A stretch of 64,000 nt of DNA, from sequence record MH221129.1. One strand, given 5' to 3'. The translations under genes were made by a program, and so were the position numbers. The notes under the pieces were generated by a model, which did not search any database, was not told the DNA's origin, and saw only the letters and a program-made list of their open reading frames with translations. Position 1 is the stretch's first letter. Every line of letters starts with the position of its first letter. Positions 25,894-38,665 of this stretch are shown one piece after another.

Positions 25894-26343
25894 TTAGCCT
25901 ACCAAATCGATGGTGATGATTTTGTCGACGTGACCTTTTTCGTTTGCCAGTCCACGGATAGCAAACGTTGGTCCCGATTTCTCTTCGTTCAGTAAGTCAC
26001 GCAATACCGAAGCGTGTGGTCCCCAAGGACGCAACTCTGCAACAGCCTGCTGGCCACGCACGCGAATGTTAGACAGCGCACCACAAACATTGCTGTAGTT
26101 CACTGCAGACTGACGGCAGATAAAGCGGTCACTGTCTGCTGGGTTGTTGACATTCAGATAAGACAAGTCCGGCTGACCAAACTCGCAGAATACACGAGGC
26201 TGTCGAACCATTCCACGTACCAACTTTTTAAGCGATGTGTTCTGATCGTACACCACACCAAACGCATTTGGCTTTGATAAATCCGCCAGTGTCACTTCGA
26301 ACCATTGATCCGATTCCCCAACCACTTTCTTAATATCCATCAA
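25894..26343 (-). CDS. Degenerate paralog of phiKZ-type (S80) prohead protease
   Basis: FEVTL, CEFGQP, RPWGP, FAIRG, IITIDLV are colinear with the S80 motifs GEYGHP, PxGP, FSxRS, IVTWDxV; His and Ser positions substituted. Confidence 0.55.
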   Translation of the reverse strand: MMDIKKVVGESDQWFEVTLADLSKPNAFGVVYDQNTSLKKLVRGMVRQPRVFCEFGQPDLSYLNVNNPADSDRFICRQSAVNYSNVCGALSNIRVRGQQAVAELRPWGPHASVLRDLLNEEKSGPTFAIRGLANEKGHVDKIITIDLVG

Positions 26344-26358
26344 ATTGCTCCTTACGTT

Positions 26359-26562
26359 TTATTGAATAGCTTCTCTAATTAACGGCGCGATAACCAACAT
26401 CATGTACGGGACACCGACGATTATCCCAGTAATCGCCGCACCGAAAACAAACAACAACTGACCAGCGAGATCTTTATCTTTCGTAAACCGTGGGAGACTG
26501 AAAAGATGTCCAATCCCCACAAGTGCCAACAGGATTACAACAACATGTAACGCAATTAACAT
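26359..26562 (-). CDS. Small two-TM membrane protein
   Basis: ORF track; hydrophobic. Confidence 0.7.
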   Translation of the reverse strand: MLIALHVVVILLALVGIGHLFSLPRFTKDKDLAGQLLFVFGAAITGIIVGVPYMMLVIAPLIREAIQ

Positions 26563-28316
26563 ATACGTTCCTTATCTAAAGTTCGTAGTGTTTCCCCACG
26601 AATATCCCAGACTGGATGCTGCGATGAATCGTACAGCGCCGGTTGGAATATTTCATGCACGATGTCTGCTAAACGACGCGCACCTAAATCATCAACACGG
26701 TTGGCCTCAACAGTACGTTCAGCAATGTACTGGTAAGTGTCCATGTCGTATTTAGTTTCTACGTTGTCGGTTTTCAGCAGCTTCATCATGCCGTGGAACT
26801 CACTGTTGTCGAGTTTGCAGATGGCAATGAGCGCACCTTCGTCCAATGGTTCCATCTGAGCACGTAGTGGGAAACGTCCTTGTAGCTCTGGCATTAACTT
26901 CGACGGAGGGGCGTCTGCGAAGCTCCCTGCAGCCACGAAAAGAATATTGGTAGTATCGATGCCGTGATAGTTTCCGCCTTCTACAAGCTTTAACAGACCG
27001 CGTTGTACGCCACTACGCGATACATGGCTATTCGAGCTACCACCCCGCTCAATAAGTTTGTCAAACTCATCTAAGAACACCACCGCAAAGTTCTCAACGA
27101 AGTCATGCCCGTTACAGTTAGGCAGCTTTTTGAGGTCTTGGCGGTTGATTGTTTCTTTTTCCGGTTCGGGTTCTTTCTTGATTTCGTAGGACCACGGACG
27201 TGGGTCAGCGTATTTGGTAAATTCCGGAGAACCCTCAAAGGTGTTGTCCCACCATTCGCACCACTTTTCAGGTGTTTCTAATCGCCGTAGCATGTCGAAA
27301 GTAAAACTGGTCGCGTCACGCGGTATCCAATTAATACCCGCTGGCTCCACACCCTCTTCATTGCCATCGAAAGTATCAAAGCCGTCCCAGAAATGCGAAC
27401 CGTCCGCACAAGACAAGTCCAGATTACTCGACATTAATTCTTGACCACAATCGATGTACATGTCGACGTGTTCCCCGATGGCCATCAGCGACATAATCTC
27501 AGCCATAAACGCTAACGCGCCAGGCCCTTCGCCACCCATAATCTCATCGAGGCGTTGGTCGACGTTATTCGTATTCAAGAAGTCCGTTATAGAATCCAGA
27601 CCAAACATCGTCTGCACCATTTCGGTGATAACCGTCAACCACTCCTGAACAGTACGACCGCCAAGGATAACTTCGTAAATATCAAAGTCGTCGTACCCCA
27701 TTGAGTGCTCGTGGCAATAGCCGACCATGAACGCACGCAAACAGTAAATGTCCTGAATTTCCTCGTAGAGATCTTTCTCATCGAGAATACCCTGTCGACG
27801 CAATAGCGCGGTGTGGTCGCGTTTAGCTTGAATTTCTAGCTGACGCTCCGCATCCCGCTCGTTTCGCTCACGCTCGACTTGTTTGCGAGATTCTTTCTCC
27901 CATTGGTCACGCGTCAAACGACCGTCCTGTTCTTCCTTCTCTACTTTGCGACGGGTACGCATTTCGATATACCAGTCGGGAAGATGGACAGAGCCGGCCA
28001 GCTCAGCAAGGTCCTTGCCGATTGATGTCACCTCACGACCCACATACCCGCTCTCGGTATATGCCGTCATGTCAAGTTCCAGGACAGGTAAACCGAACTG
28101 TGTTTTCAGCACGCGCATTAACGCAGTCTTACCCGTACCAGTAGGCCCCACAATCAACAAGTTTTGTTTGTGGACGGATAGGCGGTCAGGTGCATTGAGT
28201 TTGTTCACGCGATAACGGTTACGCATCGCGATGGCTAACATCTTCTTCGCTTGCATTTGCCCGTAGACGTATCGGTCGAAAATCTTGACGATCTCGACCG
28301 GAGTTAATTTCTCCAT
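26556..28316 (-). CDS. hslU: HslU-like AAA+ ATPase (586 aa) with unrelated large I-domain
   Basis: LTPVEIV..GQ..AKK..AIAMRNR, Walker A GPTGTGKT, GYVG, Walker B VFLDEFDK, GVQRGLL, PELQGRFP, GARRL all match HslU. Confidence 0.9.
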   Translation of the reverse strand: MEKLTPVEIVKIFDRYVYGQMQAKKMLAIAMRNRYRVNKLNAPDRLSVHKQNLLIVGPTGTGKTALMRVLKTQFGLPVLELDMTAYTESGYVGREVTSIGKDLAELAGSVHLPDWYIEMRTRRKVEKEEQDGRLTRDQWEKESRKQVERERNERDAERQLEIQAKRDHTALLRRQGILDEKDLYEEIQDIYCLRAFMVGYCHEHSMGYDDFDIYEVILGGRTVQEWLTVITEMVQTMFGLDSITDFLNTNNVDQRLDEIMGGEGPGALAFMAEIMSLMAIGEHVDMYIDCGQELMSSNLDLSCADGSHFWDGFDTFDGNEEGVEPAGINWIPRDATSFTFDMLRRLETPEKWCEWWDNTFEGSPEFTKYADPRPWSYEIKKEPEPEKETINRQDLKKLPNCNGHDFVENFAVVFLDEFDKLIERGGSSNSHVSRSGVQRGLLKLVEGGNYHGIDTTNILFVAAGSFADAPPSKLMPELQGRFPLRAQMEPLDEGALIAICKLDNSEFHGMMKLLKTDNVETKYDMDTYQYIAERTVEANRVDDLGARRLADIVHEIFQPALYDSSQHPVWDIRGETLRTLDKERIC

Positions 28317-31576: not shown

Positions 31577-31600
31577 CCTCCTCACCCGTGGGCAAGGAGG
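31577..31600 (-). terminator. Probable terminator
   Basis: CCTCCT...AGGAGG stem with A-tract 31565-31570 on plus. Confidence 0.55.
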
Positions 31601-31606
31601 TAAACC

Positions 31607-32101
31607 TTACAGCTGGTTCTCTTCGCGGTCGTCGGTCAGAATGGCTGCACAGATAAAGCGTGCCAAGCGCATTCGTGCTTCACGCACCTGCTCGTCGGTA
31701 GGATTCGGATCAACCGGTGCCGCCAGGGTGATATCGCTCAACTCTTCAGCGTACTTCTCGGCAGCCTCGTCAAACGTGTTGCGTATCGTCGCCAGCATAT
31801 CCTGCACTTCATCGCTTGGTACTGGACCATCGATAAGAATTTTCTGTGCATCGGACGGCTCTACGGTAGCGAAGTTCATTTCGTTCAACATGCCGACATG
31901 CATGGCGTTAGTGGTGATGAGATTCGCCAACACTTTTTCAAAGCGGTTGATAAACTCATCGTCCAACGGCTGACCAGTCAGTAGCTCGTAGTAGCGGGCC
32001 ATAAAAGTATTAGCGTCGTACTTTTCCTCGTGCCGCACTTCTAAATCAAAGTTGTGCTGAGGGAGCTGACCTAATTCGATCATATCCATAGTTAACCTCA
32101 A
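31607..32101 (-). CDS. Acidic hypothetical protein (~160 aa)
   Basis: ORF track. Confidence 0.75.
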   Translation of the reverse strand: MRLTMDMIELGQLPQHNFDLEVRHEEKYDANTFMARYYELLTGQPLDDEFINRFEKVLANLITTNAMHVGMLNEMNFATVEPSDAQKILIDGPVPSDEVQDMLATIRNTFDEAAEKYAEELSDITLAAPVDPNPTDEQVREARMRLARFICAAILTDDREENQL

Positions 32102-32129
32102 CGGTGTTTAAGGGTCATACAATGACGAA

Positions 32130-32408
32130 TTACGCCGCTACTGGAACAGGAGTGATTAACAGCTCCCCTTCCACTTCATGCAGCTGGTAACCATACATGA
32201 CGTTGTAAGACTTAATCCCGTCGCGCTGTTTGGCTTTCGCAACAAGTTTCTCCAACACACGGCTGTGTGCACGAGTCATTTCATCTTTCGAATAAACGAT
32301 CTGTAACACATGCTGCTCGTCGATTACGGCACGGAACTGCATCACGTTACCGTCTTCAACGTTGTAAACGACTTCTTTAGACTTTGACACTGTACGATTA
32401 ATCTGCAT
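32130..32408 (-). CDS. Hypothetical protein (92 aa)
   Basis: ORF track; GGAG RBS. Confidence 0.75.
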   Translation of the reverse strand: MQINRTVSKSKEVVYNVEDGNVMQFRAVIDEQHVLQIVYSKDEMTRAHSRVLEKLVAKAKQRDGIKSYNVMYGYQLHEVEGELLITPVPVAA

Positions 32409-33219
32409 TGTTCACTCCATTAGTAGGTTTAAGTTTACGTCCGTACAAATAACTTTCTGGTAACCAGCCGTGTTGTAGCAGATGCATTGCTTCGCACCCG
32501 CCTTCAAACTGGTGGTAAGTGTATACGACCTGATCGCCTTTAGGTAAAGACGAAAGGATACAATCGACGAAGCATTGAAAACGCGCGGTGCTCAGTCGTA
32601 ATGTTTTACCTTGGTCATCAAAAGGTTTCCCGACAATCCAACGGTTATTATCTGTGGATGTCGAGATGACCGTGCCACAAAAACCTTGCGAGTCACGCAT
32701 GGATACCAGTCGACCGCCGGTAAGCATGATATCGTAGATGCTGCTTTTGCCATAAACCATTGCAACCCAGCTCATAAACTCTTCACGGCTGTCGAACGCC
32801 TCTTCTAAAGAAGGGCAGAACGAGACGTCCGGTGTAACAGGTTTAGGGTTATGGATAGAATAGTTAACGGTGGAGCAGTGGAAGCCCATTCGTGAATACT
32901 CTTCGCCCTCTTCGCGGGTATAGTGTATCACGTAATTGCGATTGGCTGCGCGGAGAAGCGACTCTGCCAATGTGTGCAAACGGGCATCCAGGGAACGGGT
33001 CATGTTGATGATTTCTAACATGTACCCGTGGTCCAGGCACAACACCGTGGCATCGGGTGCCACATGGTCACGACTGAACACCTCAAAGACACGATAGTAC
33101 AGACGACGTTCGTCACGCATGACGCTTATTTCGATGTCGTCCAGAAAGGATAGCGATTGGCGGTCTTCCAACCAATCCCTGTCCAGCATCTTTTCAGTAC
33201 GTTCCACGACCTTAAGCAT
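32398..33219 (-). CDS. Degenerate tandem GNAT-fold protein (273 aa)
   Basis: Two motif-B-like segments (EEYSRMGF, HLLQHGW) spaced about one domain apart; no QxxGxG motif A. Confidence 0.4.
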   Translation of the reverse strand: MLKVVERTEKMLDRDWLEDRQSLSFLDDIEISVMRDERRLYYRVFEVFSRDHVAPDATVLCLDHGYMLEIINMTRSLDARLHTLAESLLRAANRNYVIHYTREEGEEYSRMGFHCSTVNYSIHNPKPVTPDVSFCPSLEEAFDSREEFMSWVAMVYGKSSIYDIMLTGGRLVSMRDSQGFCGTVISTSTDNNRWIVGKPFDDQGKTLRLSTARFQCFVDCILSSLPKGDQVVYTYHQFEGGCEAMHLLQHGWLPESYLYGRKLKPTNGVNNAD

Positions 33220-33228
33220 AAAGACTCC

Positions 33229-34038
33229 TTACGCGAGGGTATAATGGTGCGTTATCACACGGCACTCCAGTCCAGGTATTTCTGGCATTTCGTGCTCAAT
33301 CGCGACCCCCATATTGACCTTCTTACCTTTGGTGCACGCCAGCCAAAGAATCTCTTTGAAATGTTTCATGAACTCTTGTGAGTAGCGAATAGGTTCAAGC
33401 GTCTGGCAACAGAACTGTTCTGTGACGATGCTGCGAGGAAATTCCTTATACAACATCAGTGAGAACGGTCTGTCGTTTTCTAGGCCTACGAACGCCGATA
33501 CAAATCCCATGGAAAGTTCTTGCAGCATTTCCCGCGCCCCTTCGTCTTTTAACGTTGGACGCATCAAATAACAAACGTCTGCGGTCTGTTCGAGATTCAA
33601 TGACTCTAGTGTCACTACAGAGCCGTCTGCGACGTACCCGTATTCTTTAGACACGGTAATTTCAACACGCTTTGTGACCGCTTCAAAACCTAACTGTTGA
33701 TACAGCGCAGCGTGTTCAGTGTCGTGTGGCAGACAACTGATGTCGAGCACCGACACTTCAAGCAATCGCATCAGCCGTTTCCACTCGTGGAATAAGGGGT
33801 CAGATAGTACATGCAGCTCGTAGATGTAGTACACCGTGCCCGATTTGTTACCCCGGAAATACATCTGCGCCTTTCCAGAGTTACTGAAGACGAGCCAATG
33901 GTCGTCACCGTCACCGTCACCGTTCATCGGACGTAGTGACTGAATCCGTTCACGCATTCTCCCCAACGTGATCAAACGACCACTGAATTCCACGGTGAGG
34001 TCGTTCTTGTCCATCCCGTGTAAATTAAATAGTTGCAT
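33229..34038 (-). CDS. Degenerate tandem GNAT-fold protein (269 aa)
   Basis: HAALYQQLGFE motif-B-like; no motif A. Confidence 0.45.
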   Translation of the reverse strand: MQLFNLHGMDKNDLTVEFSGRLITLGRMRERIQSLRPMNGDGDGDDHWLVFSNSGKAQMYFRGNKSGTVYYIYELHVLSDPLFHEWKRLMRLLEVSVLDISCLPHDTEHAALYQQLGFEAVTKRVEITVSKEYGYVADGSVVTLESLNLEQTADVCYLMRPTLKDEGAREMLQELSMGFVSAFVGLENDRPFSLMLYKEFPRSIVTEQFCCQTLEPIRYSQEFMKHFKEILWLACTKGKKVNMGVAIEHEMPEIPGLECRVITHHYTLA

Positions 34039-34047
34039 GGTTGTACC

Positions 34048-34866
34048 TTATAAGGTGCCGATAAGTTCTCCGACCGACTTACGTTTACTGGCGTCAGCAC
34101 TCATATACCGCCCGACCTGAATCTCACGCCATTTAAATCCGTAATAGATGTCCCGCGTCAACAACGTATCAGCGTTAGACAACACGACCTTGTTCCCATC
34201 AGCAGCTTGTTGCAAGAGAAGTTTCGCCAACTCGCGATGGTCAGCTTGTGAAAATTCTTTTTTGTGGTATTGTGCGTGCTTCGACGTATCCGATAACGGA
34301 ATGTACGGCGGATCAGCGTAGATAACCGAATTCGACGGGCAGTTATTTAACACCTGTCGGAAATCAGCACACAGTAGTTCAACATTGGCTTCTGAGCAAC
34401 GCTTTGCCCATGCCAGGATTTCTTCCTCTGGGAAATAAACCCCGTTTGGGTGCGCGCCGTACGGCACATTGAAACCGCCTGACTGGTTATAACGACACAG
34501 GCCATTATACCCGTGCCGGGTTAAGTACAGAAACGTCGCCGCATCCTTAAGGTTGGGTTTACCCGTCACGCCACGACTGTTAAACTCGTCGCGACGCTCC
34601 ATGTACTTGCAGCGATTTTCACCATCCTTAAACATCGCCTTCGCTTCTACTATCAGTGCTTCTGGCCTGTCCCGCGCTATCGTTAACAGCCCAATCAAAT
34701 CTGGATTGGTGTCTGACAATATATAGTTCGGGTACGTGGTGTTTAAGAATACTGAGCCTGCCCCAACGAATGGTTCGACGAAGTAATCTGCCTCAGGCAA
34801 CACTTTCAACAGCTCAGGCAGCACCCTCGTCTTTCCACCCATCCATTTTAAAATTGGTCGTATCAC
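34048..34866 (-). CDS. dam: DNA adenine methyltransferase, Dam family
   Basis: LKWMGGK, FVEPFVGAGSVF (motif I), YNGLCRYN..G.FNVPYG, IYADPPY (motif IV). Confidence 0.95.
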   Translation of the reverse strand: MIRPILKWMGGKTRVLPELLKVLPEADYFVEPFVGAGSVFLNTTYPNYILSDTNPDLIGLLTIARDRPEALIVEAKAMFKDGENRCKYMERRDEFNSRGVTGKPNLKDAATFLYLTRHGYNGLCRYNQSGGFNVPYGAHPNGVYFPEEEILAWAKRCSEANVELLCADFRQVLNNCPSNSVIYADPPYIPLSDTSKHAQYHKKEFSQADHRELAKLLLQQAADGNKVVLSNADTLLTRDIYYGFKWREIQVGRYMSADASKRKSVGELIGTL

Positions 34867-34869
34867 CCG

Positions 34870-35871
34870 TTATCCTCTCAATCCCAGTAAAAAAGCCTTA
34901 GCCGGTGTGGATGGCGCTGGATTCGCAGGTTCATGCACCGTAGGTTTTTCGCGTAGGGTAAGTTCTACACGATTACCTTTTGCTTTCTTCCAGCTAACCA
35001 GTTCGTTGTTCCGTTTTAACACCATGCTGCGCACAACTTGCGTACAACGCAGAATGTCGCCGTAGAGGTGATTGGCCGCTTCGTTGTTTGCACCTGTCTC
35101 GATGTAGACCGTATCGCTGTGACGTTGGGCGAAATCAAACAGTGCACCGATTAAACGACGACCGATGCCTTTACGCTGATGTGTGTACTTAACCGCTACG
35201 CCACTCAACATCACCACGCCTTTACTCACCAGACGCATTTGGGCAACACCCACGATTTCTTTACCGTCGCGCCACACCACCGTTTCCACATTTGCGTGTG
35301 AGATACGATTAACCATAGTGTCTGCAATAGGACTGGTATAAAGATAGTGACCACGGACGTCTTGACTAAGTTCTTCATAGATGCCACCTGCGACTAACTC
35401 ACGTACGCGTTCTCTATCTGCAATGGGAAGCTCTGGAAAGCGTTCGCCGCTGATGTACTGGATTTCTGACGCGGTAATGACACCGTCAAACAACCGCGAT
35501 GAGCACGACCACATTAAATCAGCAAGTTCAAAACCACGACTGATAAGTTGCTTCTCGACCTCATCGTTAGGAGCAGGACAGGACATGAATTCAAAACCGG
35601 TGTGGTCAAGAATCAATGCCAGGCCAACTGCATCTAACGCCCCCGCTTCAAACTCTTCAAAATAGTGACAGGTCAGTGTCGGGTCGCCGTGTTGATACGT
35701 TGCAACTAAGTACCCCACCCAACGTGCTTGCGCGTTGCGAACTACGTACACAGAGTAGGAAGGGTCTTTCAGATACTTACTCAACCGGTCTGCACGTGCA
35801 CCCGTACCAACGAAATTAGCAAAATCATCAGTCCGGATATCGGCACGGAATAATCTGCCCACTGTTCTCAT
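34870..35871 (-). CDS. Tandem GNAT acetyltransferase (333 aa), C-terminal domain intact
   Basis: VAVKYTHQRKGIGRRL (motif A) and NNEAANHLY (motif B); N-domain ends LISRGF. Confidence 0.8.
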   Translation of the reverse strand: MRTVGRLFRADIRTDDFANFVGTGARADRLSKYLKDPSYSVYVVRNAQARWVGYLVATYQHGDPTLTCHYFEEFEAGALDAVGLALILDHTGFEFMSCPAPNDEVEKQLISRGFELADLMWSCSSRLFDGVITASEIQYISGERFPELPIADRERVRELVAGGIYEELSQDVRGHYLYTSPIADTMVNRISHANVETVVWRDGKEIVGVAQMRLVSKGVVMLSGVAVKYTHQRKGIGRRLIGALFDFAQRHSDTVYIETGANNEAANHLYGDILRCTQVVRSMVLKRNNELVSWKKAKGNRVELTLREKPTVHEPANPAPSTPAKAFLLGLRG

Positions 35872-35936
35872 TGTAATTCCCTCAAAAAGGTATTGCTGTC
35901 ACATCATGAGTCAAAAGTGTAAAAAGACAAAAAAAG

Positions 35937-35958
35937 TAAGGGAGCAAAAGCTCCCTTA
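35937..35958 (-). terminator. Terminator, 9-bp stem
   Basis: TAAGGGAGC-aaaa-GCTCCCTTA with A-tract on plus. Confidence 0.75.
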
Positions 35959-35964
35959 TCTTAC

Positions 35965-36624
35965 TTACAGAGTGAGGCGTGGTGGGTTATTTCCGTCATA
36001 CAGGCCACGAGATGCGGCGTGGGCGAAAGAGTTATACATCTTCGCAAAGTTATCGAGATGTGTACGTACTTCCGGGTCTTCGAGATTACCCACAACAACA
36101 TTCCCGGCGGCACCGAGTAAGAAATAACCGAAGTTCTCACCATCGGTAAAGTTGATGTCGGTGGTAACCGGATGAACCATCGTTGCATTCGGCAGAATGT
36201 TACCGATAAGTCCTGCCGCACGAATGAGGTGACCCGCTTCTTTCTCTTCGCCATTCAAGAACGAGCGCAGGGCTGCGACTGCAATCAATGGATAGATGTT
36301 CACCCGGCTTTCTGTGCTACGTAACACGCCGATGACTTTACCGTGAGTCTGAATCGAGAACGACCAAAGTTCCGCGCCGCAGTGGATGGAAAACTTCAGC
36401 CACGGGGCTGGTGTGATCGTGATGACTTCTTCGCCCGGTTCGATGAGATAATCCTGCTCAACACGAATCTGTTTCATGCGGGCAGCGAAGTTGGCGGCCA
36501 GATCTTCGGGTAAAGCTGAGGGTTGTGGTACGTTCACTTTGTCTGCCTCTTTTTTGTTGGCGGGATTTGTACCGATGGTGGTACGTCTGTCTCGGACGGG
36601 TGTCGTACGTGGTGCTTTTGCCAT
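35965..36624 (-). CDS. Hypothetical protein (219 aa)
   Basis: ORF track; TAAGGAG RBS. Confidence 0.8.
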   Translation of the reverse strand: MAKAPRTTPVRDRRTTIGTNPANKKEADKVNVPQPSALPEDLAANFAARMKQIRVEQDYLIEPGEEVITITPAPWLKFSIHCGAELWSFSIQTHGKVIGVLRSTESRVNIYPLIAVAALRSFLNGEEKEAGHLIRAAGLIGNILPNATMVHPVTTDINFTDGENFGYFLLGAAGNVVVGNLEDPEVRTHLDNFAKMYNSFAHAASRGLYDGNNPPRLTL

Positions 36625-36651
36625 AGTGTATACTCCTTACGTGGTGCTTAC

Positions 36652-37059
36652 TTAATAGTCTCTGTGTTCTGGGAATTCTCGTTCGCAAGCGATGCGGTCA
36701 TTCTCTACACGGTTCAGATGTGCCGGAAGAGACACACAGTTGTTACAAATACACAATTCTTTATCGCCTTGACGGGCGTCAAAGTCGTACCATTTCCAGC
36801 CGACGGTGTCGCGCTTCGGGAAAGTTCCTTTGCAGTCATCACAGATGACTTCTTCCGCTGCTATTTCAGCTTGTAACTTTTCCCAGCACGCTTCGCACAT
36901 GTAGTACGTTTCACGACCCCATGGGTCACATTCCGCTGTATAGCGTGTGGCCACAGACCCCACCTTGAGGTGCTTACAACGCTCGTCGTCTTCTTTCATC
37001 ACACGACGCGTGATACCATTAACAAACCAGTTCATAATGGGTCTCCTAGTGAACCACAA
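36652..37059 (-). CDS. Multi-CxxC zinc-finger protein
   Basis: CKH, CEAC, CDDC, CNNC. Confidence 0.7.
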   Translation of the reverse strand: MWFTRRPIMNWFVNGITRRVMKEDDERCKHLKVGSVATRYTAECDPWGRETYYMCEACWEKLQAEIAAEEVICDDCKGTFPKRDTVGWKWYDFDARQGDKELCICNNCVSLPAHLNRVENDRIACEREFPEHRDY

Positions 37060-37417
37060 CGGAAGGCTTACGGTTCACCACAGAAAGGCGACCAGTCTCT
37101 CCTTGACGGATAGGGCAGTTCTTCATGTAGTCCACGCCCGATTCCATCTTGAAGACGTATCTGCATTTACCGTTACGGGATTGGTACTCAACCGTATAGG
37201 TTAAACGCAATGTATCCGCTACACGCATCAGTGTTTCGATGGTGACGTTCTTTTCACGTTCGTTTTTGATTGCTGAAATCTGGGAAGCTGAACAGCCCAC
37301 CAGTTGCGCAATCTCTTTTTGGGTTACGTCAATCTCGGTAATTCTTTTAATAATAAAAGACAGACGAACCAAGAAAGCTTTCTTAGCCAACACAACAGCA
37401 GCATGTTTGAAACGCAT
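37046..37417 (-). CDS. XRE/HigA-like helix-turn-helix protein
   Basis: TQKEIAQLVGCSASQISAIKN...VTIETLMRVADTL. Confidence 0.85.
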   Translation of the reverse strand: MRFKHAAVVLAKKAFLVRLSFIIKRITEIDVTQKEIAQLVGCSASQISAIKNEREKNVTIETLMRVADTLRLTYTVEYQSRNGKCRYVFKMESGVDYMKNCPIRQGETGRLSVVNRKPSVVVH

Positions 37418-37444
37418 GATAATACTCCTTTAGTTAATAGTCGA

Positions 37445-37897
37445 TTAGTTCAATGGTTCTAAAACGTATATGGGGAAGAAGATACCGAGGCTTGTCTTGT
37501 GGCCACGACGTATCATCCACGCCGGTAAGATTTTCTCCGGAAGCATCACACCTGGTGTGGCAAAATGCACACACGACGGATTATCGTCTGGGTCTGACCA
37601 ATATTCCCAGGTGCCGACAGTGTTACATTTAACTTTGAAAATGCGTGACAAATCACGCACAGCCACCTGATCCCAACTAACGACCACTTTCTTCTTGTCG
37701 CCGTATTCCAACAGGTAGTCGTGAATCGGCATTTTATCGAAGTGGTTGAATGGTACCGCGTTGCGCAACGGCTTAAGATAACGACGACACCACAACCGTA
37801 GTCTGATACTGCGAATAATGCCGCTCAAGTCAGGGAAGTATGTTTCACGAACCACTTGAGCCTCTGGAAAGGTGGGCCGTACAGGTTTATTTGACAT
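37445..37897 (-). CDS. Early hypothetical protein (150 aa)
   Basis: ORF track; first gene after promoter 37946..37971. Confidence 0.8.
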   Translation of the reverse strand: MSNKPVRPTFPEAQVVRETYFPDLSGIIRSIRLRLWCRRYLKPLRNAVPFNHFDKMPIHDYLLEYGDKKKVVVSWDQVAVRDLSRIFKVKCNTVGTWEYWSDPDDNPSCVHFATPGVMLPEKILPAWMIRRGHKTSLGIFFPIYVLEPLN

Positions 37898-37945
37898 CTT
37901 AATACTCCTTACGAAAATGGTCGATTAGGCGTTTTGTTATCAACG

Positions 37946-37971
37946 CTCACTTAAGTAATATATATCTGAAA
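37946..37971 (-). promoter_or_regulatory. Early promoter TTTCAGATATATATTAC-TTAA-GTGAG
   Basis: Exact copy of the invariant positions. Confidence 0.8.
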
Positions 37972-38012
37972 TCATTTTGCATAGGACTAGTTCGAAGTGT
38001 AAAAAATGAAAG

Positions 38013-38036
38013 CCCCCTTACCCGAAGGTAAGGGGG
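38013..38036 (-). terminator. Terminator, 10-bp stem, UUCG loop
   Basis: CCCCCTTACC-cgaa-GGTAAGGGGG. Confidence 0.85.
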
Positions 38037-38041
38037 TACTA

Positions 38042-38665
38042 CTAGGCGGCGAGAATCTGTTCAACGATTCTGGCGGCGACCAAAGCCATATCGTCATTTG
38101 CGCTCACGTTCATCAGCTTGAACTTGTCACCACCTTCGGTAATGATGTGATGCGCGAAACGATACTGGTCGCGTAAGGCGTCCCAGGAGCGACTGTCGCG
38201 CAGATACTTCGCGGTTAATACTTCGTCATCCCAGTTCTTGCCCTGGGCCTCTACGCGCTTCCTGAAGCGTTCTGTGGCACTTTCGAAGTCGATGTCCATT
38301 GCAACGTACAATTGCGGAGCATTAGGATGGTCTGCGACCTTGGAACGGAAGACTTCACCTTTGCCATCAACGCCCTGATAGACAACAGTGGATGGACAGA
38401 AACGGTCGAAGATAACCACGTCGTATTCAGGGACAACATTCTCGAGGGTGTGTAAGAAGTCTTCACACATCGCCTCGGCAATCCGTGCATTAGAAGCAGA
38501 CTGCACAACTAACGACCGTGCGCGAATCCCTGCTTCTGTGGTGTTCGTTGGATGGTTAACCACCACGGCGTTGATCCCTGCGCAACGTAGCATTTCCAAC
38601 ACCAGTTTAGCCAGTGTGCTTTTGCCTGCGAAGTCAGGTGCGTCGAACGACACCGATTTTAACAT
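38042..38665 (-). CDS. tmk: Thymidylate kinase
   Basis: P-loop DAPDFAGKST, HP, VIFDRFCPSTVVYQG. Confidence 0.85.
   Translation of the reverse strand: MLKSVSFDAPDFAGKSTLAKLVLEMLRCAGINAVVVNHPTNTTEAGIRARSLVVQSASNARIAEAMCEDFLHTLENVVPEYDVVIFDRFCPSTVVYQGVDGKGEVFRSKVADHPNAPQLYVAMDIDFESATERFRKRVEAQGKNWDDEVLTAKYLRDSRSWDALRDQYRFAHHIITEGGDKFKLMNVSANDDMALVAARIVEQILAA

Follow-up and report, generated by a model that had tools for sequence, protein, structure and literature searches.

Three proteins with the tandem GNAT acetyltransferase fold and one DNA adenine methyltransferase (Dam) are encoded side by side in the Salmonella phage SPAsTU, within a stretch of 64,000 nucleotides (nt) of sequence record MH221129.1 that we refer to as the window. 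We call the four genes, all on the minus strand, A, B (the dam gene), C and D. Our preferred reading is that A, C and D are diverged paralogs of one tandem-GNAT family, forming a clade-specific array with one member competent to bind coenzyme A (CoA) and two that have lost the CoA loop, and that B is an independent, orphan, GATC-specific Dam inserted into this array; the GNATs and Dam would then be neighbors by descent and not one machine. We give this reading, taken as a whole, a probability of about 0.55. It departs from the original prediction for this locus, in which an adenine methylase embedded among one active and two degenerate GNATs formed a heteromeric modification complex.

The region from 32000 to 36700 is 100% identical to SPAsTU, with equal coordinates, and to phage STsAS; both are classified as Seoulvirus, in the SPN3US group, and are jumbo phages of roughly 240 kb. 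Gene A (34870 to 35871; phrog_8663) encodes a tandem-GNAT protein of 333 amino acids (aa) and is the ortholog of SPN3US_0104. Next come B (34048 to 34866; 272 aa; ortholog of SPN3US_0105), a Dam-family N6-adenine methyltransferase gene with a GTG start, then C (33229 to 34038; 269 aa; SPN3US_0106 ortholog; phrog_9941) and D (32398 to 33219; 273 aa; SPN3US_0107 ortholog; phrog_13677), both encoding tandem GNAT-fold proteins. The gaps A/B, B/C and C/D measure 3, 9 and 9 nt, and the four open reading frames (ORFs) lie exactly at the positions, and with the 3-9 bp spacing, first proposed for them. Because this order is kept in four phage genera and nonsynonymous divergence (dN) lies far below synonymous divergence (dS), we regard the cassette genes as real. 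No paper treating SPN3US gp104-107 or the A-Dam-C-D cassette was found in the literature searched.

Sequence comparison alone does not place C and D. Neither has a Pfam match at E ≤ 0.1 or any NCBIfam match, BLASTP detects no similarity between the two, and their profiles align with each other (hhalign) at E 0.003-0.008 only. Since profile searches against PDB sequences returned chance-level matches only, such as PDE4D and N-WASP, the fold of both proteins had to come from structure prediction. AlphaFold, supplied with alignments of 10 (C) and 12 (D) relatives, gave a confident model for C (mean predicted local distance difference test score, pLDDT, 86.5; predicted template-modeling score, pTM, 0.72). 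In the models of both proteins, two GNAT-type alpha/beta units (beta1-alpha-alpha-beta2-4-alpha3-beta5-...) follow one another. Foldseek searches of the PDB with the C model returned tandem GNATs for all top matches, with E down to 9.5e-10, and the D model matched best VipF, a tandem GNAT of the clavulanate pathway and Eis2, with E down to 4.1e-7. Overall, the PDB matches of C and D are almost exclusively tandem GNATs: VipF, MAB_4324, 2wpw, Eis and MshD, at E 1e-9 to 1e-6. By these models, both proteins adopt the tandem GNAT fold. The earlier GNAT assignment of these two ORFs, offered as tentative, was therefore correct, and the structural comparison proposed for checking it bears it out.

The resemblance to characterized tandem GNATs extends to architecture and stops at the cofactor site. 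Legionella VipF, Mycobacterium abscessus MAB_4324, Eis, the mycothiol synthase MshD and the clavulanate-pathway protein 2wpw have, like C and D, two GNAT domains per chain of about 270-330 aa. All of them bind CoA; in contrast, C and D lack the Q/RxxGxG/A loop in both domains. This motif A, the CoA pyrophosphate loop between beta4 and alpha3, is absent from 7/7 C sequences and 5/5 D sequences, and from 3/3 sequences of a related Derbicusvirus protein, X. In a motif scan the strict form was present only in A of the seoulviruses and in the Derbicusvirus proteins GNAT1 (G1) and GNAT2 (G2). In the collinear profile alignment of A with C, the QRKGIG of A stands opposite a glycine-free segment of C. 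Catalytic silence within this fold has a precedent in MshD, one of whose two GNAT domains can be catalytically silent.

C and D are maintained. Against the closest relative, C has a dN of 0.049 and D, the faster-diverging of the two, one of 0.163. Because dS is saturated even at this distance, we rejected a fine dN/dS measure and limit the claim to dN being far below dS; both genes, and A with them, are under purifying selection (dN 0.05-0.16). The two families are narrowly distributed. A full HMMER scan of 1.84 billion proteins yielded only 12 representatives of the C family, all from this phage clade, and word-indexed searches confined the D family to the same clade, as they did the A family when queried with an A/G1/G2 profile. 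These searches found no bacterial or characterized homolog of C, D or A. Sequence identity between C or D and the tandem-GNAT enzymes in the PDB is 9-16%.

A is the conventional member of the set. Residues 184-271 match the Pfam GNAT model PF00583 (E 1.1e-13), PF13508 and PF13673 also passed, and a motif scan places an intact CoA loop, QRKGIG, at residue 232 within this C-terminal GNAT domain. The nearest NCBIfam model is RimI, with a score well under its cut-off, and A is therefore best described as a generic GNAT. Structure links it to C: the A ortholog of phage Kwan aligns with the C model across 280 columns with a template-modeling (TM) score of 0.63 in a search of a viral structure library. 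Judging from these comparisons and the collinear hhalign alignment with C, A probably has a degenerate GNAT as its N-terminal half, and the protein as a whole is tandem, with an intact acetyl-CoA motif, as it had been called at the outset. Separately, the A orthologs of seoulviruses carry a Pro/Lys-rich C-terminal tail of ~45 residues (residues ~290-333; window 34870-35000), ending in a conserved hydrophobic-x-x-G-x-RG pattern, which Derbicusvirus GNAT1 and GNAT2 lack. This tail may act as a signal for targeting or for interaction.

Evidence that the three GNATs belong to one family comes from structure and from profiles. The best non-orthologous matches of C in the viral structure library are the Kwan A ortholog (E 6e-14) and a 289-aa GNAT from phage Derbicus (E 9.5e-14); the D ortholog of phiEaH2 follows at E 1.7e-7. 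By hhalign, A is strongly related to both G1 (E 2e-16) and G2 (E 7e-17), and G1 is related to X, the next gene of the Derbicusvirus array, at E 3.6e-5. The family, of ~250-330 aa, varies in copy number: two in Erskinevirus, three in Seoulvirus and Derbicusvirus, and four in phage Caitlin, whose extra paralog we call E (gp119; 5610-6374 of L005). The gene that takes the place of D in Huxley and Wellington (4764-5525 of L007 and 4841-5578 of L006) aligns better with E than with D. Three further candidates for membership, p219 (the gene upstream of A), CR5_104 and RisingSun gp166, were rejected at hhalign probabilities of at most 1.3%; a tblastn match of C to CR5_104 (E 0.001) was unconfirmed by profiles. 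A family of ~214-aa proteins of the same Erwinia jumbo phages also resembles the C model, with E values from 1e-7 to 3e-5 but low TM scores of 0.28-0.35; its members in BFVD are A0A1B2IE03 (Kwan, 215 aa), A0A1B2IDM8 (Huxley, 214 aa), A0A1B2IBG0 and A0A8E7G123. Tried as a candidate, p219 showed no profile similarity.

The methyltransferase is unambiguous as to family. B matches PF02086 with E 4.4e-55 (187.6 bits; cut-off 22) and TIGR00571 with 253.5 bits (cut-off 114.85), and it aligns end to end with Escherichia coli Dam (PDB 2g1p) at E 6.1e-56, all of which bears out the first call of this gene as dam. Compared with this, its match to T4 Dam is far weaker, at E 2e-7 only. The catalytic DPPY and the S-adenosylmethionine-binding FxGxG (FVGAGS) are conserved and aligned with E. 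coli Dam, and the DNA-contact hairpin GYNGLCRYN is identical in the two proteins. The residues that would contact GATC in B, which we take from the E. coli Dam-DNA structure to be the lysine of an N-terminal LKW element and the beta-hairpin, are among those shared. B is thus, from its sequence, an E. coli-type Dam, probably with GATC specificity. Its best PADLOC model is an orphan methyltransferase, and Pfam and NCBIfam searches of the neighboring genes revealed no nuclease domain. The alignment, the motifs and the hairpin tie B to E. coli Dam and the orphan Dams of enterobacterial phages; unlike theirs, the setting of B is a nucleus-forming jumbo phage and the inside of a GNAT paralog array.

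The start of B deserves a correction. Its GTG at 34866 is preceded at 7-8 nt by a Shine-Dalgarno-like GAGAGGA, inside the end of gene A, and it brings back a conserved N-terminal element, LKWxGGK, that aligns with E. coli Dam. In STsAS and SPN3US the annotated Dam begins at an ATG and has 264 aa (window 34842-34866). Because the GTG has both the ribosome-binding site and the restored LKW, the annotated starts are probably 8 codons short.

GATC itself is rare in this DNA. The window holds 113 sites against 306 expected from its trinucleotide content (second-order model), a ratio of 0.37 that is the lowest among the 16 four-base palindromes; CTAG follows at 0.47 and the others are at least 0.73. 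A single phage thus combines avoidance of the Dam site with an encoded E. coli-type Dam, which suggests selection against GATC, exerted for example by MutH or by nucleases directed at this site, in addition to self-methylation.

The independence of Dam from the GNATs is best seen across relatives. In the derbicusviruses CR5, Derbicus and Phobos, the equivalent place is occupied by Tmk-GNAT1-GNAT2-X with no Dam at the locus; in CR5, X is followed by CR5_102, an ortholog (46% identity) of p92, the gene next to D in the window. Moreover, neither tblastn (E ≤ 1) nor phmmer (E ≤ 10) detected a Dam homolog in the complete CR5 genome. Conversely, erskineviruses have Dam-C-D at the locus without A, and a search with A returned nothing from Erskinevirus among the best 60 of 68 matches at E ≤ 1. 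In the Erwinia jumbo phage RisingSun, a related Dam stands alone: its neighbors lie on the other strand, and none of them is GNAT-like. Because relatives carry Dam and GNAT-like genes without each other, a joint Dam-GNAT machine such as the heteromeric complex first envisaged is unlikely. Seoulvirus, Machinavirus and Wellingtonvirus all preserve A-Dam-C-D, and Erskinevirus preserves Dam-C-D. A comparison of gene order, suggested as a check on the prediction, therefore came out divided: the linkage of Dam to C stood in four genera, and the linkage of Dam to the array in Derbicusvirus and to A in Erskinevirus did not. Since the whole neighborhood (Tmk, a helix-turn-helix gene, p127, p219, A ... 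p164) is collinear throughout these phages, the adjacency reflects common descent and is no specific sign of a complex.

Identities point the same way. To the closest relative (L023, Logan contig SRR34965338_201) and to SPN3US, respectively, A is 88 and 61% identical, C 92 and 78%, and D 75 and about 55-56%, whereas the values are 83 and 86% for Dam and 55 and 95% for p92. These discordant patterns indicate that Dam and p92 have histories different from those of the GNATs. Over 31607-38665, comparison with L023 and L003 gives a mosaic in which p92 has the pattern opposite to that of A, C and D and Dam is equidistant, and from which recombination breakpoints inside the cassette follow. The close relative, with 87-92% aa identity for A and C, occurs both in the Logan assembly of SRR34965338 and on a contig of 39.9 kb that was submitted as Salmonella enterica; jumbo-phage DNA thus travels with the read sets of bacterial isolates. 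In another set of relatives, the records of SPFM1, 5, 6, 7, 8, 10, 12, 14, 15 and 20 (LR5359xx), A, C and D, at around 142-148 kb, give only 2-5 short matching pieces that span 7-34% of the query. Sister SPFM records have them intact, and the fragmentation is either a matter of assembly frameshifts or real decay of the cassette.

Several observations weigh against a paralog array with an independently inserted Dam. Some of the links that hold the family together are weak: by hhalign, C and X align at E 1.1e-4 with a probability of 56%, and A and C at E 3.3e-3 with a probability of 10%, albeit collinearly over 209 columns. D is joined to the other family members only through structure, and the sequence links of both D and E are weak. 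The D model is itself of moderate quality (pLDDT 79.9, pTM 0.56), with the other four models at a pLDDT of 62-67. Nor would a missing CoA loop, a feature read from the sequences, prove that catalysis has been lost in C and D. Finally, C is present in four genera (Seoulvirus, Erskinevirus, Machinavirus and Wellingtonvirus), and in every one of them Dam lies directly upstream of it with a gap of a few bases; given this constancy, Dam and C/D could conceivably be linked in function in that lineage.

If the array and Dam are independent, their functions may be considered separately. Dam alone would methylate GATC on phage DNA. Phages of this group replicate their DNA inside a protein shell, plausibly keeping host Dam out. 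A would act as an acetyl-CoA-dependent N-acetyltransferase on a protein or small molecule, in host takeover or counter-defense. Phage GNATs that acetylate host proteins exist: AcrVA5 acts on Cas12a and phiKMV Rac on the alpha subunit of RNA polymerase; both are single-domain enzymes, and their likeness to A is at the level of the superfamily. A role in takeover or counter-defense is the generic prediction for jumbo-phage GNATs (PMC7824862). C and D would be pseudo-GNATs that bind without acetylating; they may adapt or regulate A, or act by themselves as binders or decoys.

The last of these options can be taken further, with C and D unlinked to A altogether and acting on their own as decoys, sponges or host-factor inhibitors of GNAT ancestry. 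Erskinevirus, which retains C and D in the absence of A, fits such a role, as do the variation in copy number from two to four among genera and the rapid divergence of D when set against the 86% identity of Dam to its SPN3US counterpart. In most genera, however, A is kept beside C and D, and the divergence rates of the cassette genes are not outliers for the region. We consider this unlikely.

Less probable still is that C and D are active transferases using a donor other than acyl-CoA, either aminoacyl-tRNA (Fem/Sbb17-type) or an acylated acyl carrier protein (ACP). This would explain the missing loop, and Fem-type enzymes are indeed tandem GNAT folds without a CoA motif. The C model matches the aminoacyl-tRNA-dependent peptide synthases Sbb17 and Sba18 (E 2.6e-8 to 4.3e-8) and a viral FemAB protein (E 1.3e-4), the D model matches FemX (E 7.4e-3), and three polar residues of C (R124, K239 and H265) are invariant among its orthologs. 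CoA-dependent tandem GNATs rank higher in the same searches, however, with Sbb17 and Sba18 at ranks 15-21 for C and FemX at rank 37 for D. No match to FemAB or any other Pfam profile appears at E ≤ 0.1, and the predicted secondary structure does not seem to contain the long helical tRNA arm of Fem enzymes. The short neighboring protein p92, considered as an acyl-carrier-like partner, was rejected: it has no obvious ACP features by eye and no Pfam or NCBIfam profile match.

A complex of Dam, an active GNAT and two pseudo-GNATs, carrying out Mom-like acylation or hypermodification of adenine or coupling methylation to acylation, is the idea with which the locus was first read, and we now think it very improbable. 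Besides the conserved order in four genera, the gaps of 3-9 nt and the Shine-Dalgarno sites inside each preceding gene speak for it, and so does the precedent of Mom, a GNAT-fold enzyme functionally tied to Dam (PMC7824862). Like the array, Mu Mom is phage-encoded, has a fold of the GNAT superfamily and involves a Dam gene or dependence on one. Mom, however, is a single 241-aa protein, whereas A, C and D are tandem-domain proteins. Comparison of Mu Mom with A, C, D, E, G1, G2 and X gave hhalign probabilities of at most 0.8% and BLASTP E values of at least 0.83, and tblastn of Mom against the window gave no match. The mom promoter of Mu is controlled by Dam through an upstream GATC cluster. Here, no GATC occurs in 34311-36100, and hence none in 35872-35964 upstream of A; likewise, among the window's ORFs there is no small one overlapping the start of A in the manner of com, the translational activator of mom. 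The homologous array of CR5, in a genome without Dam, the Dam-C-D of Erskinevirus without A, the inherited, collinear neighborhood and the separate identity pattern of Dam all argue against a complex.

At the far end of probability lies a scheme for Seoulvirus, Erskinevirus, Machinavirus and Wellingtonvirus in which the altered GNATs C and D were recruited to Dam, making or reading a non-canonical adenine modification in the phage nucleus; we hold this to be a long shot, which, if true, would mean a new DNA modification system unrelated to Mom.

The cassette belongs to a longer unit. A terminator-like hairpin with a T-run (35937 to 35958, minus strand; a 9-bp stem with 5 GC pairs and a T-rich tail) lies upstream of A, where a terminator had been placed at 35937, and closes the preceding unit, whose last gene is the 219-aa ORF p219 (35965-36624). 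Downstream of D come p92 (32130 to 32408; 92 aa; phrog_7896), whose first 11 nt, from the ATG on, are shared with the end of D, and p164 (31607 to 32101; 164 aa; phrog_8221), the final gene ahead of a second hairpin with a T-run (31577 to 31600; a 10-bp stem with 6 GC pairs), the probable 3' end of the unit; all three are on the minus strand. Because this is the next terminator on the same strand, the transcription unit probably comprises six genes, with A, Dam, C and D co-transcribed with p92 and p164. The four genes of the operon as first drawn thus stand, and its extent probably does not. PADLOC returned no match for A, C, D, p92, p164 or p219. Elsewhere in the window, an ORF for a 586-aa AAA+ ATPase (26556-28316; PF07724, PF00004) adjoins a Peptidase_S80-like ORF of 149 aa (25894-26343); searches of the window with SPN3US gp149 and gp150, from the place corresponding to 25894-28316, were negative at E 1e-5.

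C and D are newly recognized here as acetyltransferase-fold proteins. On present evidence the locus is a highly diverged variant of a known superfamily together with an ordinary Dam, not a new kind of system, and the Dam-coupled DNA acylation complex, attractive as an idea, is unsupported and now removed. Two families of hypothetical proteins conserved in SPN3US-like jumbo phages, phrog_9941 and phrog_13677, can now receive an annotation, that of tandem GNAT-fold proteins without a CoA loop; among the phages concerned are several characterized as candidates for the control of Salmonella and Erwinia. Expansions of enzyme and pseudoenzyme paralogs in the early regions of phages often mark functions in host takeover or counter-defense, and A, C and D constitute a defined gene set that can be tested in the SPN3US genetic system.

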